A DNA stretch of 64,000 bases from positions 1,612,001 to 1,676,000 of the forward strand of contig NC_134035.1 in NCBI RefSeq assembly GCF_964204645.1. Reading direction: 5' to 3'. The position numbers and the translations under genes are program-made. Each line of letters begins with the position of its first letter. Within the stretch, counting starts at the first letter, position 1. Source of the stretch: Tubulanus polymorphus (lineage: Eukaryota; Animalia; Nemertea). This document shows positions 51,001 through 60,000 of this stretch, in pieces. The notes beneath the pieces are model-generated. The model ran no database searches and was not told the origin of the DNA. It saw only the letters and a program-made list of their open reading frames with translations.

Positions 51001-54000
51001 CTACATTTGCGAGAGTTAACTCTGAACTCAGGATCCAGTTCCACACATGAGTTAGATTTAACTCTGAACTCAGGATCCAGTTCTACAGTTACGAGTTAAA
51101 GTTAACTCTGAACTCGGGATCCAGGACCCAGTTCCACAGTTGTGAGTTACAGTTAACTAAATTAATCATCAGTTATCAACAGTAAGGCGCTCAGTAACAT
51201 CTTTCATATTTCTGTTCAAATCAGAGACAAATTCAGTATTTCTTGTCATAAAATAGTAACAAATACCGAAAATCAGTAACAGTTTGGGCAGCTCTGCTAA
51301 AAATGTCTGGCTACAAACGGACATATCTAAATAGGATCATGAATATGTGCAGACTTACCATTTTCCGTCGCATCGACGGGGGCGGCGGGGGCGGCAGCTG
51401 CATTTTCTGCCTATAATATAATAACAATCATGATGTTAAGGTTTAAGAAAACAACAAAAAAATTTGTCAAAATTCATGCAGTTTTTACTAGCGTTTCGAT
51501 AACACGAATCGTAATTAGAGAGATAATGGGGCCAATTCCCTATATGAAAATCAAAAGCTGAAAGAGAGCCTGCAAACAAGAGCATTTCAAGAGCTCAACT
51601 AATGCAGCGCAAAGTTTCCAAACAAACCAAGAAATCACAATTTCAAAGTTTTTCTTGATTTCTCTTTATAGTACATTCGGCGTTTATGTATAGCAGTTCC
51701 GGTCCATTGGATAATCCTTTCATCATCGCTTTAATGAAATTTGAACAGTAGGGAACTGGCACGCCAGCTATCCCTTCAGATGGCACCGCTTAGGTATGTG
51801 AGACAATCTAATGGGACAGAAAGTGAACAAGAAGTGCGACAAGTCGTCGTCAAATTAGAGCATCGATATTTTTTCGCGCATCTCTTATTGTATTAATAGT
51901 GAGCACTGGATCATATCATTACGGTTAAAAATACCCGACTATTTGATATCTCTAATTTGAGTAGTTTTCACCTGAATATATGACAGCGCAAGGGCTCTAA
52001 TAACTTACTCTTCGGCGTCTCAGCCGCGGCGATCGCCTCAGCGGCGGTATCTCGTCTCTCTGGAAAAAACAAAACAATCAACATTGATTAAATCATCGAA
52101 ACATTAAATGATTTCTTACTGATTGGAGAATTCGGTATCAGAATAGCTCGGTAGGACCAGAGAGATTCAGGGATTCTATATGTGAATAGCTCGGTAGGAC
52201 CAGAGATTCAGGGATTCTACATGTGAATAGCTCAGTAGGACCAGAGAGATTCAGGGATTCTGTATGTCTTCCTGTTCATTGACGTGTCAGTAATGATCAA
52301 CACATTCAGTGTATTTGATGCATTATAATTATTTTCACTTATAGTTCAAACTTACATCAGCTTGCGGCGGCGGCGGCGGCGTCGCAGGTGTTTCAGTCTA
52401 AAAAGTAAAAAAACGATATTTCCATTGGTTATAAAAACATGAAAATGATTCATTTCAATTTAATATAATAAAACTTGGTTCCACAGTTCAGGACCCAGTC
52501 CCACAGTTACAGAACCTGGCTCCGCAGTTCTGGACCCAGTCCCACAGTTACAGAACCTGGCTCCGCAGTTCTGGACCCAGTTCCACAGTTTGAAGTTATG
52601 ATCTAGTAAAGAGATACCGATGCTGGATCCTAGTTTTCCAGCCAATGATATTCAGTTAGTTCCGTGCGATGGTCATCAAGCCGATTGTCATCAATTTCTA
52701 GATCTCTCCCTGTCCCGCCGCCCCAGAATTAGGTATTTTTACTTTTTTTTGGTTTCGATTTTTTGGTGCCACGAGATCCAAAGCAGAAGAATTCTACACT
52801 ATTTTAATTCTTTTTCCGATGCAGATTTTGAAAACAATAAAATATCCTCATAATCATTGGTGAACCACAATGATAATAATCTACATGACTTAAAACAGGA
52901 AATAATGGTCAAGTCTTCATGAATAACCATGAACTGTGGGTGCAGAGACGCGAAAATCACTTGAAAAGTGGTTTGAACGCTCGGACAACTGGAAACATTT
53001 AAAAATTTGTCAGTTTTTACCATAGTTTATCATTGTTACAATGGTGGTTGTCACCTATGTTGAGGATTTACCGCTAGGGGCAACATTGAAACCCGGTCTA
53101 TGAAATCGGGCCACGGTTGAGGATTTACCCCTAGGAGAAAATGATGTGGTCTATAAAACCCTGCCCAGATTATCAATAAACTTATTTGAAATTAGCTTCA
53201 CTTAAAATGATTTGACTCAAATCAAACTTACTTTAACCGGTCCGACGCGTGCCCGTTTAGGGCTAACGGGGTCCTATAAAATAAAAACAAGTTGAAATCA
53301 ACATCCAGAATTTTCAAACATATTTCTGAAGGAAATCTCAATTTCAGATTATCTTAATAATCTTTGGTGAGCCACGAAAATGATAATCTACACAACTAAA
53401 AAATGGAAATGAATAACCATGAACTGCGGGTGCAGAAACGACAACACCACTTGCAAAAAGGGCTTCAACAAACTCTCCACAATCACAAGAGGCACGTACT
53501 ACCATCGCGAAAATCTTGTGCCTTTTTTTCCATGCCCAAAATAGATGTTCAAGCCACTTGGAAAGTGGTTTTTTTCGCATCGACAAACTCTCGTCGCAAT
53601 CACAAATCATACTTGTCGTAAGCTTAAACTTTCACAAGATCCCGTCGGCAGGCGGACAGACGGAGAGACAGGCGGACAGACGGAGAGACAGGCGGACAGA
53701 CGGAGAGACAGGCACACAGACGAACCGACTGTAAAATGATTTGATGAAATTCAAACTCACCGATGCCGGTACCTCGAGCTTCCTCTTCTATAAAATAAAA
53801 AATCAACTTTAGTTTAACGACGTCAACAAAAATTCAGACATATTTCATCTGCAGTCGTTTGTGTTCAACTGTAAATTCAATAGAAATGTTCACAATATTT
53901 ACCGGCACATTCACGCACGTGTGGAATTCATTTCTCTACATAAAAAGAAAAACAAGAGCTCAATTTAGCATTTATGAAAATCAGAATAAATTATCTCAAA

Positions 54001-57000: not shown

Positions 57001-60000
57001 AAACTAAAAACATGGCCAAAACTTACTTCTTTCGTTGTTGTTATTGTTTGTTTGCTCTGATGCCATGAAAGAAAAAAAGAGAATTAATTTTAGTTTTGTT
57101 ATTTTATGTTCAGTACCACACGTAGGTATCAATATACGTAATAAATGAGTTCTAAGCGACGGATGCCTCGTTATAGATATTGTTTTGATTCTGTATCGTT
57201 ATTTAATAAAACGAACAGGAGAATTTTTATGACTTTGTTCCCGGTATGAAATACATTGGCTGTCAGATAGAAATGAACACGACAGAAAATCCATGATACA
57301 GAAAAATGCTGACTTACTTCCTTCGGTGCTGTTGCTGTTGGTTTCTGTTGCAATAAAAGAAAGAAAATTCAGTAAGTTTTTTTTTTTTATATTTCATATT
57401 CAGCAGCAAACGTTAATAAACACAGTAGACATAAAAACTGGACAGGTTTATATAGATGTCTGTATCTGAAAAATGATTTTGATGTCATTAGCATAAATAT
57501 CTTACATTAAGTTAAGTGCAATTCCTGAGTGCTAATGGATTAAAGTTGATGTTAAGACAGGATCATCTACGAGGGAATACACGGGAAACGAATGACGCTT
57601 AATTATAAAATTGAAACTTACTCGTGCAGGAATGGCCGCTACCGCTGCTGTTGCCGTTGGTGTTGGTTTCTGTTGCAATAAAAGAAAGAAAATTCAGTAA
57701 GTTTTTTTTTTATATTTCATATTCAGCAGCAAACGTTAAACACAGAAGACACAAAAACTGGGCAGGTTTAATATCTGTGTCTGGAAATCGATGAAAATCG
57801 CAAAAAATAATTGCCCATAGGCCAAGAGGTTTACCACAGCCTTATGAAATGCTTATATCAGGTAACGAAATAGGGATGTAAAGTGTAAGGTGCGAGAAGT
57901 TTCGGTCTCGGTTAGAGAAATGAACGTAATCATAAAATCGTAATTATAAAATAGAAACTTACTCGTGCAGGAACGGCCGCTGTTGCTGCAGCTGTTGTTG
58001 GTGGTTTCTGTTGCAATAAAAGAAAGAAAATTCAGTTTTGTTTTAAATTTCATATTCAGCAGCAAACGTTAATAAACACAGTAGACATAAAAACTGGACA
58101 GGTTCATATAGATATCTGTATCTGAAAAATGATTTTGATGTCATTAGCATAAATTTCTTACATTAAGTTAAAATCAAACATGCCACATGGTAAATCATTT
58201 TGAAGGGAATCGAACTCAGATTAAATTCTGTAACTTTTGACAAAATTCTGATGAAAAGCTCTTTAAGAATCGATTGTTATATTATTTGATGATCATTGGT
58301 TTACATATATCTGTTGGTTAATATTATCAATGAACTTGTGGTCCAGTCGCCAATCCCACGCGAAAAATGATTTGGACGCTTGATAATCAGACTTATTTGA
58401 TATTCAACGCCCCCTGGTGAAAATATACAAAAACCGTTGACCTTGAAACTCGTCACTATCATAGAAAATGTCGCAAGTGAACAGATGGAGAGATGAACAG
58501 ACGGACAAAAAAGTCCATGATACAGAAAACTTCAAACTTACAAATGCTGCTGCTGTTTTTGCTGCTGCTGCTGCTGCTGCTGCTGCTGCTGCTTTCGTCT
58601 GCTATAAAAGAAAAGAGAATTCATGAATTTCTTGCGTTATTTCGTATTCAGTTGCAAACATTAAACATAGATCATATCTTGATTAAAACAAAAGAAACAA
58701 AAAACAAGTTTTTTATCTGTGTTTGGAAAAACTCTGATATTTATGTAACTTTGAAATTGATATTTCTGTATTCGTTTGTTTTACGGTTTAAAAGATATAA
58801 AGTCCATTAAACAGACAAATTCAAACTTACTTCTAATGCTTTTTTTTTCCTTTCCCTCTGGAAAGAAAAGAGAATTAATTTATTTAGTTTTGTTATTTCA
58901 GACTCAGTAACTGTGTGACCTAAATCCGCCTGTAATTATTCGAAAGAATTTACTTACTTCCATTTTTCTCTTCTCTTTCAGAGTCTATTAAATAAAAACG
59001 ATTCAATTAAATTCTTTTTCTATTTTCAAGAGTGATGAGAGTAATCAACAATAGAAATTTCGGCGACGATAAACTAGAAATTATTGTGTGATTGTTTGGT
59101 ATCAGCTGAGCTGTTAAAATGAGGAGAAACTAAAACTTAGCAAAGTGGCAACAACTGGAAGACAGGTAAAGAATGTTGCAGTCTTCGTAAAAAACGACAG
59201 AGTTTACTTAATTTGTTATTGACTTCGAAAGAATTAAGCTTAGCCGTCTTAAAGCGAAGTTTCACGGGAATCCATCGAGAAATACAGGGCAAACTTTGGT
59301 TTTTCGTAGCTAGTCGACCAATGGTTGGAAATCACTGAACGCGCGATAGCTCAGTCGAAACATATTCCAGCCATCTTGGAATCATGAAGTCCGAACTACA
59401 GCGACCGTGCTCAATACCACAGTCGATCATTTCTGACTATAGTCATAACTGACATTCTGTTGCACTTAGTTCACAAATAGTCGACTAACTGCGATAACCA
59501 AAGTTCGTCCAGGCTTTGTCGCGCTAAAAATAAATTCAAGATGGCCGCCGATGACATCCTTCAATAGGGGTTAACGTGTGCCCTATATCGCACCGAGGAT
59601 TGCAGGCTGGATGATGCTGGGACTGCACACACTGAGTAAGATTAGATGGCCCCCACAACCGAAGAAACATTAATATACTCTCATATTATAGTTGTCATAA
59701 TCAAGTATGGATATTATTAACACTATTATTCTTACCTCCTGCGCGACGAGCCGGTCGCGTAGTTCGTGGGCGTACTCGTAGCAGTTGTCAACTGCTACTT
59801 TCGGCCCACGAACTACCACAATGGCGTGTACCCTCGGCGTATCTACGATCACTTGCTGTAAATAGAGAACAAAAGAGACTGTATGAGCATTTTAAATCAG
59901 TAGCAGTTTGAAAGTGATGAGAAATAAACGTCATTCACTGAAAGCTCGTTATATACAACAATGAATTTCAGTAATCTGTTCGTTTATAATCGATATGAAA

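Follow-up and report, generated by a model that had tools for sequence, protein, structure and literature searches.

The micro-exon islands

The window analysed here, a stretch of 64,000 nucleotides from the nemertean Tubulanus polymorphus (C11:1612001-1676000 of the 268-Mb assembly, C11 being contig NC_134035.1), carries on its minus strand, between positions 52009 and 58984, a series of very short islands that read as the micro-exons of a protein-coding gene. This 7-kb interval exists in the genome in nine copies that are 92-98% identical, six on C11, two on C9 and one on C8. The initial annotation had listed 15 islands with canonical splice sites, free of stops and in phase 0-0, and all are present at the lengths claimed for them, namely 27, 27, 60, 45, 48, 27, 30, 33, 36, 54, 33, 27, 42, 42 and 51 nt (E1 to E15). 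When every GTRAGT-type donor is paired by script with the pyrimidine-rich acceptors that precede it, the same islands are returned at the same lengths. The number, on the other hand, must be raised from 15 to 17, as two further phase 0 islands, Xa (55776-55750, 27 nt) and Xb (53935-53903, 33 nt), both with weaker GTAAAT donors, had been overlooked. All 17 are bordered by AG and GT, have a length that is a multiple of 3 and are open in phase 0. A T-rich pyrimidine tract ending in CAG or TAG precedes each island and GTAAGT follows it, often as GTAAGTTTGA; the listed islands with another donor are E8 (GTCAGT) and E12 (GTGAGT).

The chain begins with two small charged exons, E1 (58958-58984, 27 nt, phase 0-0, TLKEKRKME), which is identical in eight copies, splice sites included, and E2 (58831-58857, 27 nt, RERKKKALE). 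These are followed by E3 (58542-58601, 60 nt), which encodes poly-Ala, has a tandem TAG-CAG acceptor and occurs among the copies in five different lengths, each of them a multiple of 3. E4 (57963-58007, 45 nt) is a KP(T/A)n..PAR cassette belonging to a duplicated module of exon plus intron, and E5 (57622-57669, 48 nt) and E6 (57318-57344, 27 nt, KPTATAPKE) are cassettes of the same type. Next come the Thr-rich E7 (57027-57056, 30 nt), which has in-frame variants of +3 and +6, the basic E8 (56811-56843, 33 nt, RKR(R/C)RS) and E9 (56385-56420, 36 nt, QPVSPPK...), which contains an S-P-x-K site. Xa (DINLFDDLW) shows 1 synonymous change in nine copies, and E10 (55559-55612, 54 nt), acidic and rich in proline (DDFPEPPPP...), is invariant in all nine. 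The alternative acceptor reported for this last exon does exist as an internal out-of-frame AG, and of the two acceptors the upstream one follows the better pyrimidine tract. E11 (54592-54624, 33 nt), Xb, which is likewise invariant in nine copies, and E12 (53761-53787, 27 nt) lead to E13 (53232-53273, 42 nt), a paralogue of E9. The interval closes with E14 (52356-52397, 42 nt), made of TP and poly-Pro and varying by -3 and +3, and the Arg-rich E15 (52009-52059, 51 nt), identical in 6/6 copies compared.

Chance AG...GT islands, chosen by eye in AT-rich DNA, could in principle imitate such a series; the splice sites were originally picked by eye, and alternative AGs do lie near some of the acceptors. 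A strict mechanical scan, which takes the nearest pyrimidine-rich acceptor before each GTRAGT at a distance of 21-70 nt, nevertheless finds 13 islands on the minus strand of 52009-58984, and 13/13 are open and in phase 0-0. The same scan returns 0 islands on the opposite strand and, over the first 44 kb of the window, approximately 0.2-0.3 per 7 kb, and in 500 first-order Markov simulations the mean was 0.55 islands, with 0.07 open ones. For 15 independent lengths, the probability of all being divisible by 3 is 7e-8. In addition, 12 of the 16 minus-strand GTRAGTT sites in the whole window fall inside these 7 kb, and the GC content of the exons is 0.515 versus 0.352 for the introns. The scan, in conjunction with the reading frame maintained among the paralogues, effectively refutes the explanation by chance, to which we assign a negligible probability.

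Extension of the reading frame beyond the islands

The islands had been said to join larger exons at both ends, and this holds. On the 3' side, E15 is continued by D1 (51359-51410, 52 nt, phase 0 to 1), D2 (50736-50801, 66 nt, phase 1 to 1), D3 (48362-48597, 236 nt, phase 1 to 0) and the terminal coding exon D4 (47560-48027, 465 nt plus TAG), all on the minus strand; D3 is common to a distant sub-family, described below as family B, and D4 encodes a conserved C-terminal motif of approximately 50 amino acids. When checked codon by codon, the D1-D4 chain runs through phases 0, 1, 1 and 0, all junction codons are sense codons, and the sole stop is the last codon (47560-47562). Three asymmetric downstream exons that exactly compensate each other would be hard to account for if they did not belong to a single reading frame.

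On the 5' side lies a candidate exon of 120 nt (59736-59855, minus strand, phase 0, 40 codons), hydrophobic and structured-looking in translation, which would form part of the same transcript. It is 95-100% conserved next to each of the nine gene copies, and related matches occur at four other sites, C11:3015120 and C8:13998046 and, more weakly, C8:13995665 and C8:13996389. A further minus-strand micro-exon of 45 nt is found at 63835-63879, and the chain runs on well past 63879 and beyond the end of the window, which had been overlooked initially. In the adjoining sequence (L010, window-equivalent 64001-72100, minus strand), there are 16 further phase 0 micro-exons of 24-45 nt, in which a five-exon module (PEVLEEIPPP / ITVEAEIHF / NRQTATNT / NSTTT..APE / RKQTAAKA) goes through about three rounds, two of them complete and one split by an intron of 2,980 nt that may conceal further pieces. 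The chain ends, also on the minus strand, in an ATG start exon at window-equivalent 72020-71997 (L010 8020-7997), which reads aaatATG GCT CCA AAA CGA AAG CAG ATA and then gtaagt, encoding MAPKRKQI; the start codon, in the context aaatATGG, thus stands approximately 8 kb beyond the end of the window.

At this extent, the gene spans approximately 24.5 kb and comprises some 40 exons, with about 690 codons if every exon is included. Approximately 35 consecutive exons are symmetric and in phase 0, all being micro-exons of 24-60 nt except the one of 120 nt. Introns measure 100-934 nt within 52009-58984 and 100-3979 nt over the gene. Genes of this kind are invisible to views based on open reading frames (ORFs), and gene predictors easily miss or fragment them.

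Nine paralogous copies

To compare the paralogues, the copies were aligned exon by exon with 100 nt of flanking sequence, which gave 6-9 copies per exon. Every exon is present in every copy, and none of the 17 exons compared contains a stop codon in any copy. GT donors are intact in all copies examined, and the AG acceptor is altered in three instances, two of which have another AG 3 nt upstream. All indel events within exons (17/17) are multiples of 3, as against 6/32 in the flanking introns (Fisher p = 1.6e-8). Cassettes of the E4/E5/E6 type, with the pattern KPT...IPAR, number from 3 to 7 per gene copy, range from 24 to 51 nt and are in frame in 36/36 instances. This is variation at the DNA level: from one of the nine copies to another, cassette exons have been added, have disappeared or have changed in length, always with the frame preserved. 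The duplication extends beyond the exons themselves, as evidenced by the flanks of E4, E5 and E6, which are 89-96% identical to one another, and by the upstream intron sequence that E9 and E13 have in common. In translation, D3 and D4 are 97-100% identical among all nine copies. No retrocopy displaying exon junctions is visible in the matches to these two exons; all copies retain the intron. The interpretation as a real coding gene, made initially from a single locus, is thus upheld by a frame kept in nine paralogues and a single stop, although the multi-copy nature of the gene had been overlooked.

Tandem acceptors of the NAGNAG type (tagCAG, gcagCAG) are found at E3 (58599-58604) and at E4-type cassettes (approximately 58008-58013). 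In some paralogues, the second AG of the tandem acceptor is mutated to ACG, by which the exon border would shift by exactly one codon.

Divergence among the copies is heterogeneous from exon to exon. The 17 exons contain 49 variable columns in addition to the 17 indel events, and the ratio of nonsynonymous to synonymous differences per site (pN/pS), summed exon by exon, is approximately 0.63. Seven of the 17 exons are invariant, among them E1, E2, E10, E14 (its length variants aside), E15 and Xb, whereas the variability of E4, E5, E7, E9 and E13 far exceeds that of their flanks. Within E9, codons one to seven (QPVSPPK) have undergone only synonymous changes and the last five vary in amino acid, and E13 behaves alike. 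That the PVSP(P)K codons of both exons change only synonymously points to constraint on the S-P-x-K motifs.

A general acceleration of the exons was considered and rejected: the synonymous difference (pS) of 0.047, versus 0.013 in flanking intron, that was obtained from local alignments shrank to 0.036 versus 0.013-0.033 when the copies were aligned globally, and we make no claim of faster evolution in exons, taken as a class, than in introns. Within E9 (56385-56420), E13 (53232-53273) and the stretch from E4 to E7 (57027-58007), several-fold more variable than their 100-nt flanks in an effect that likewise shrinks globally, the substitutions are clustered, as might result from gene conversion over short tracts between paralogous exons or from diversifying selection.

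Weighing the gene against a decaying amplicon

We consider it probable, with good confidence, that 52009-58984 is the central part of a minus-strand protein-coding micro-exon gene, one of nine copies, with a disordered and probably nuclear product. Several observations weigh against this. Most exon indels fall within triplet repeats (GCA, CCG, ACA), in which slippage by itself tends to produce multiples of 3; triplet-periodic sequence confined to the islands is, for its part, itself a coding signature. The copies are young, intron divergence being 1-3%, so the lack of stops is only weak evidence. Exon divergence in the global alignment (0.036) is not lower than that of introns (0.013-0.033), the lowest values being those at splice sites. 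The sole candidate RNA run, a run guessed to be RNA and amounting to 38 Mb of contigs, has 0 contigs on window positions 52008-58007. No AATAAA and no histone-type stem-loop occur within 2.8 kb 3' of the stop. Finally, the nuclear location of the product is read from composition and motifs only.

The empty RNA run, the missing poly(A) signal and the level of exon divergence would also be expected if the gene had been functional until recently and its nine copies were now untranscribed or pseudogenes within a large segmental duplication, and the repeat-rich, satellite-laden surroundings, with their partial inverted copies, speak for such a silent or decaying amplicon as well. It does not, however, sit easily with 17 exons that have accumulated 49 variable columns and 17 indels without a stop or frameshift in any of the 6-9 copies compared for each, with GT donors maintained throughout and AG altered in three exon instances only, with codons bearing motifs that vary only synonymously, or with the near identity of D3 and D4 at the protein level in nine copies. 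We therefore judge decay to be very unlikely and retain the reading as a coding gene.

Predicted product and protein family

The 35 phase 0 exons (420 codons) would encode a protein of strongly biased composition, with A 14%, T 14%, P 12.6%, E 9.3%, R 8.6% and K 6.9%. These six residues make up 65% of the total, and F, W and Y together only 2.4%; such bias, with almost no aromatics, is typical of intrinsic disorder. The N-terminus, MAPKRKQI followed by PEVLEEIPPP, is charged and, as judged by eye, without a hydrophobic leader. Several basic clusters resemble nuclear localization signals (NLSs), including HRRRRRP in D4, and S/T-P-x-K/R sites are present. Judging from these features, the product is probably an intrinsically disordered, nuclear or chromatin-associated phosphoprotein. 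Of the nuclear disordered product proposed initially, the disordered and non-secreted character is well matched by the biased composition and the lack of a leader; the nuclear part follows from the motifs. The C-terminal module is short and conserved and probably helical. An AlphaFold2 model of the last 76 amino acids, built from an eight-row alignment, is loosely helical with a mean predicted local distance difference test (pLDDT) score of 58.8, a quality too low for fold comparison.

A Pfam search of D3, D4, the 120-nt exon and the family B exons returned nothing above noise, and a profile search of the PDB with the C-terminal alignment found no match. Against 1.84 billion representative proteins, the terminal exon (155 amino acids) gave five matches, all of them on a PEPEPE low-complexity stretch, which suggests that the species' own proteins are probably absent from this collection. 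Within the genome, a second sub-family, family B, comprises approximately 40 near-identical genes in tandem arrays at C6:0.65-1.75 Mb, C3:0.42-1.33 Mb and C8:15.1-16.3 Mb, with a gene spacing of approximately 33 kb. Family B has only the D3/D4 C-terminal region in common with the nine-copy gene, at 42-53% identity (42-46% over the C-terminal motif of about 50 residues). Its members start with MPKA.KKTRG, and their 5' part is different, with fewer exons, not all of which are symmetric. By these comparisons, the predicted protein family is an orphan, lineage-specific one of >50 members, in which the nine copies form a sub-family.

Transcription and splicing

Transcription and splicing of the gene are predicted here from its exon signals. 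GTAAGT serves as the donor in 31/35 phase 0 exons, and the consensus extends to GTAAGTT. Together with the long pyrimidine tracts and short introns, these strong donors lead us to expect efficient, intron-defined and largely constitutive splicing. Three sequencing runs that contain the stretch behave as DNA, as they include 60-69% of the words sampled from a 10-kb query that is mostly intron, with near-complete cover and intronic contigs.

The initial annotation counted up to 2^15 exon combinations, which is a theoretical ceiling and not an observation; the combinatorial splicing system suggested there is deduced solely from the symmetry of the exons. Symmetric micro-exons skipped in varied sets could give rise to a large repertoire of disordered, motif-varied proteins, a possibility compatible with the gene reading favoured here. 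Any subset of the approximately 35 exons, all of them in phase 0-0, could be skipped in frame, and each carries roughly one recognizable short motif. Three exons have weaker donors (GTAAAT in two and GTCAGT in one), tandem NAGNAG-type acceptors occur at E3 and the E4-type cassettes, and the transcripts of schistosome micro-exon genes (MEGs) are alternatively spliced (PMC10526429, PMC10399815). The 31 perfect donors, the strong pyrimidine tracts and the short introns are nonetheless characteristic of exons that are efficiently included, tandem duplication of modules would account for the symmetry just as well, and the sole candidate RNA run has no contig on the locus. On the strength of the splice sites, constitutive inclusion of most micro-exons is probably the rule, and we regard extensive skipping as unlikely. 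If any exon is skipped, its weaker donor makes each of Xa, Xb and E8 a first candidate, and the tandem acceptors do the same for E3 and the E4-type cassettes with regard to in-frame shifts of 3 nt.

Surroundings of the gene

Tail to tail with the gene, at 40826-42469 on the plus strand, lies a partial inverted copy of its 3' part, made up of fragments of D3 and of the regions of E13 and E15 at 89-92% identity. Scrambled pieces of the gene are also found near other copies, for instance at C8:13952670-13955026. Within the intron between E9 and Xa, positions 56008-56207 show a contig depth in the DNA runs that is 50 to 200 times that of their surroundings, with many loose ends; a short repeat of very high copy number, possibly a miniature inverted-repeat transposable element (MITE) or a short interspersed nuclear element (SINE), is inserted here. 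A tandem repeat of 160 bp with 4 units (46737-47371) starts approximately 190 nt past the stop codon. Farther away, 22800-33600 is a large macrosatellite, both strands of which carry long spurious ORFs in several frames, and 5800-16400 contains repeat ORFs rich in proline and serine. The first 46 kb of the window yielded no conserved gene, and an Rfam search of the window gave no match. The telomeres of the genome are of the TTAGGG type.

Proposed origin of the micro-exons

We propose that the micro-exons arose via tandem duplication of modules consisting of an exon plus its intron. Since every module is in phase 0-0, the frame survives when one is gained, lost or altered in length, as is seen among the paralogues. 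The spliceosome would recognize the tiny exons by intron definition, through strong donors, long pyrimidine tracts and short introns, and most would be included constitutively.

A more far-reaching proposal, which we put forward tentatively and think unlikely, is that of an amplified, lineage-specific family of nuclear 'motif strings', in which each micro-exon contributes one short linear motif and the motif set is varied both by cassette gain and loss among the copies and by combinatorial skipping at the RNA level. The motifs would include a cyclin-dependent kinase (CDK)-type SP site, an NLS, poly-Pro, an acidic-hydrophobic element and an Arg anchor, and the diversification would resemble that of MEGs, applied to an intracellular, chromatin-directed protein. 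The large duplicated arrays would fit a role in germline conflict or dosage.

If expressed, the gene would be a natural system in which to study how the spliceosome recognizes long runs of exons of 24-60 nt, would offer a view on the module-by-module growth of disordered proteins, and would allow a test of whether exon symmetry serves isoform diversity or is a by-product of tandem duplication.

Comparison with known systems

HMGN proteins start with MPKRK and have the core RRSARLSA, and CENP-C has the arginine anchor RRSxR. The predicted product resembles HMGN and other acidic-patch binders in its MAPKRK start, its disordered body rich in A, K, P and E, and the RRSPRL of E15. HMGN proteins are approximately 100 amino acids long and are not known outside the vertebrates. 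A search of the whole genome with the Pfam model HMG14_17 (PF01101) gave no match, the control genomes being silent too, and the candidate motif lies in a 17-codon exon, too short to score by itself.

The initial annotation likened the architecture to that of schistosome MEGs, a comparison that stands as regards the very short exons, their lengths in multiples of 3 and the introns of 100-3979 nt. By definition, a MEG has 10-20 exons of 6-81 bp, with lengths mostly divisible by three, and introns of 100-5000 bp; its product is small and secreted, with a conserved signal peptide, and its transcripts are alternatively spliced (PMC10526429). As in MEGs (PMC10526429, PMC4350168), the coding sequence consists mostly of very short multiple-of-three exons between ordinary terminal exons, and the genes form a multi-copy, lineage-specific family with disordered products and some fast-evolving exons. 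MEG proteins, however, are small (up to approximately 190 amino acids) and secreted, with 10-20 exons, typically of 15 bp, whereas the gene described here has approximately 40 exons, micro-exons of 24-60 nt, a predicted length of about 690 amino acids, basic NLS-like clusters and no signal peptide. Compared by described features only, it shares the architecture but neither the signal peptide nor the size, and is thus MEG-like in structure and not a member of a MEG family. In the literature searched, micro-exon genes are discussed only for schistosomes. The architecture that in blood flukes is associated with variable proteins where parasite and host meet is here carried further, in a basic, disordered orphan that looks intracellular.

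Well-known examples of mostly disordered proteins assembled from symmetric exons include the titin PEVK region, tropoelastin, the fibrillar collagens with their 54-bp exons and the products of the SCPP genes. For human genes, it is an established general rule that those encoding disordered proteins consist of symmetric exons multiplied by tandem duplication within the gene (Schad et al. 2013, PMC3632108). Like the genes of that class (PMC3632108), the one described here has phase-symmetric exons and low-complexity disorder in its predicted product, along with paralogous adjacent modules of exon plus intron that vary in number in frame. It goes beyond them in its approximately 35 consecutive 0-0 exons, nearly all shorter than 60 nt, in encoding an orphan and probably nuclear protein, and in being amplified, as a gene, nine times.

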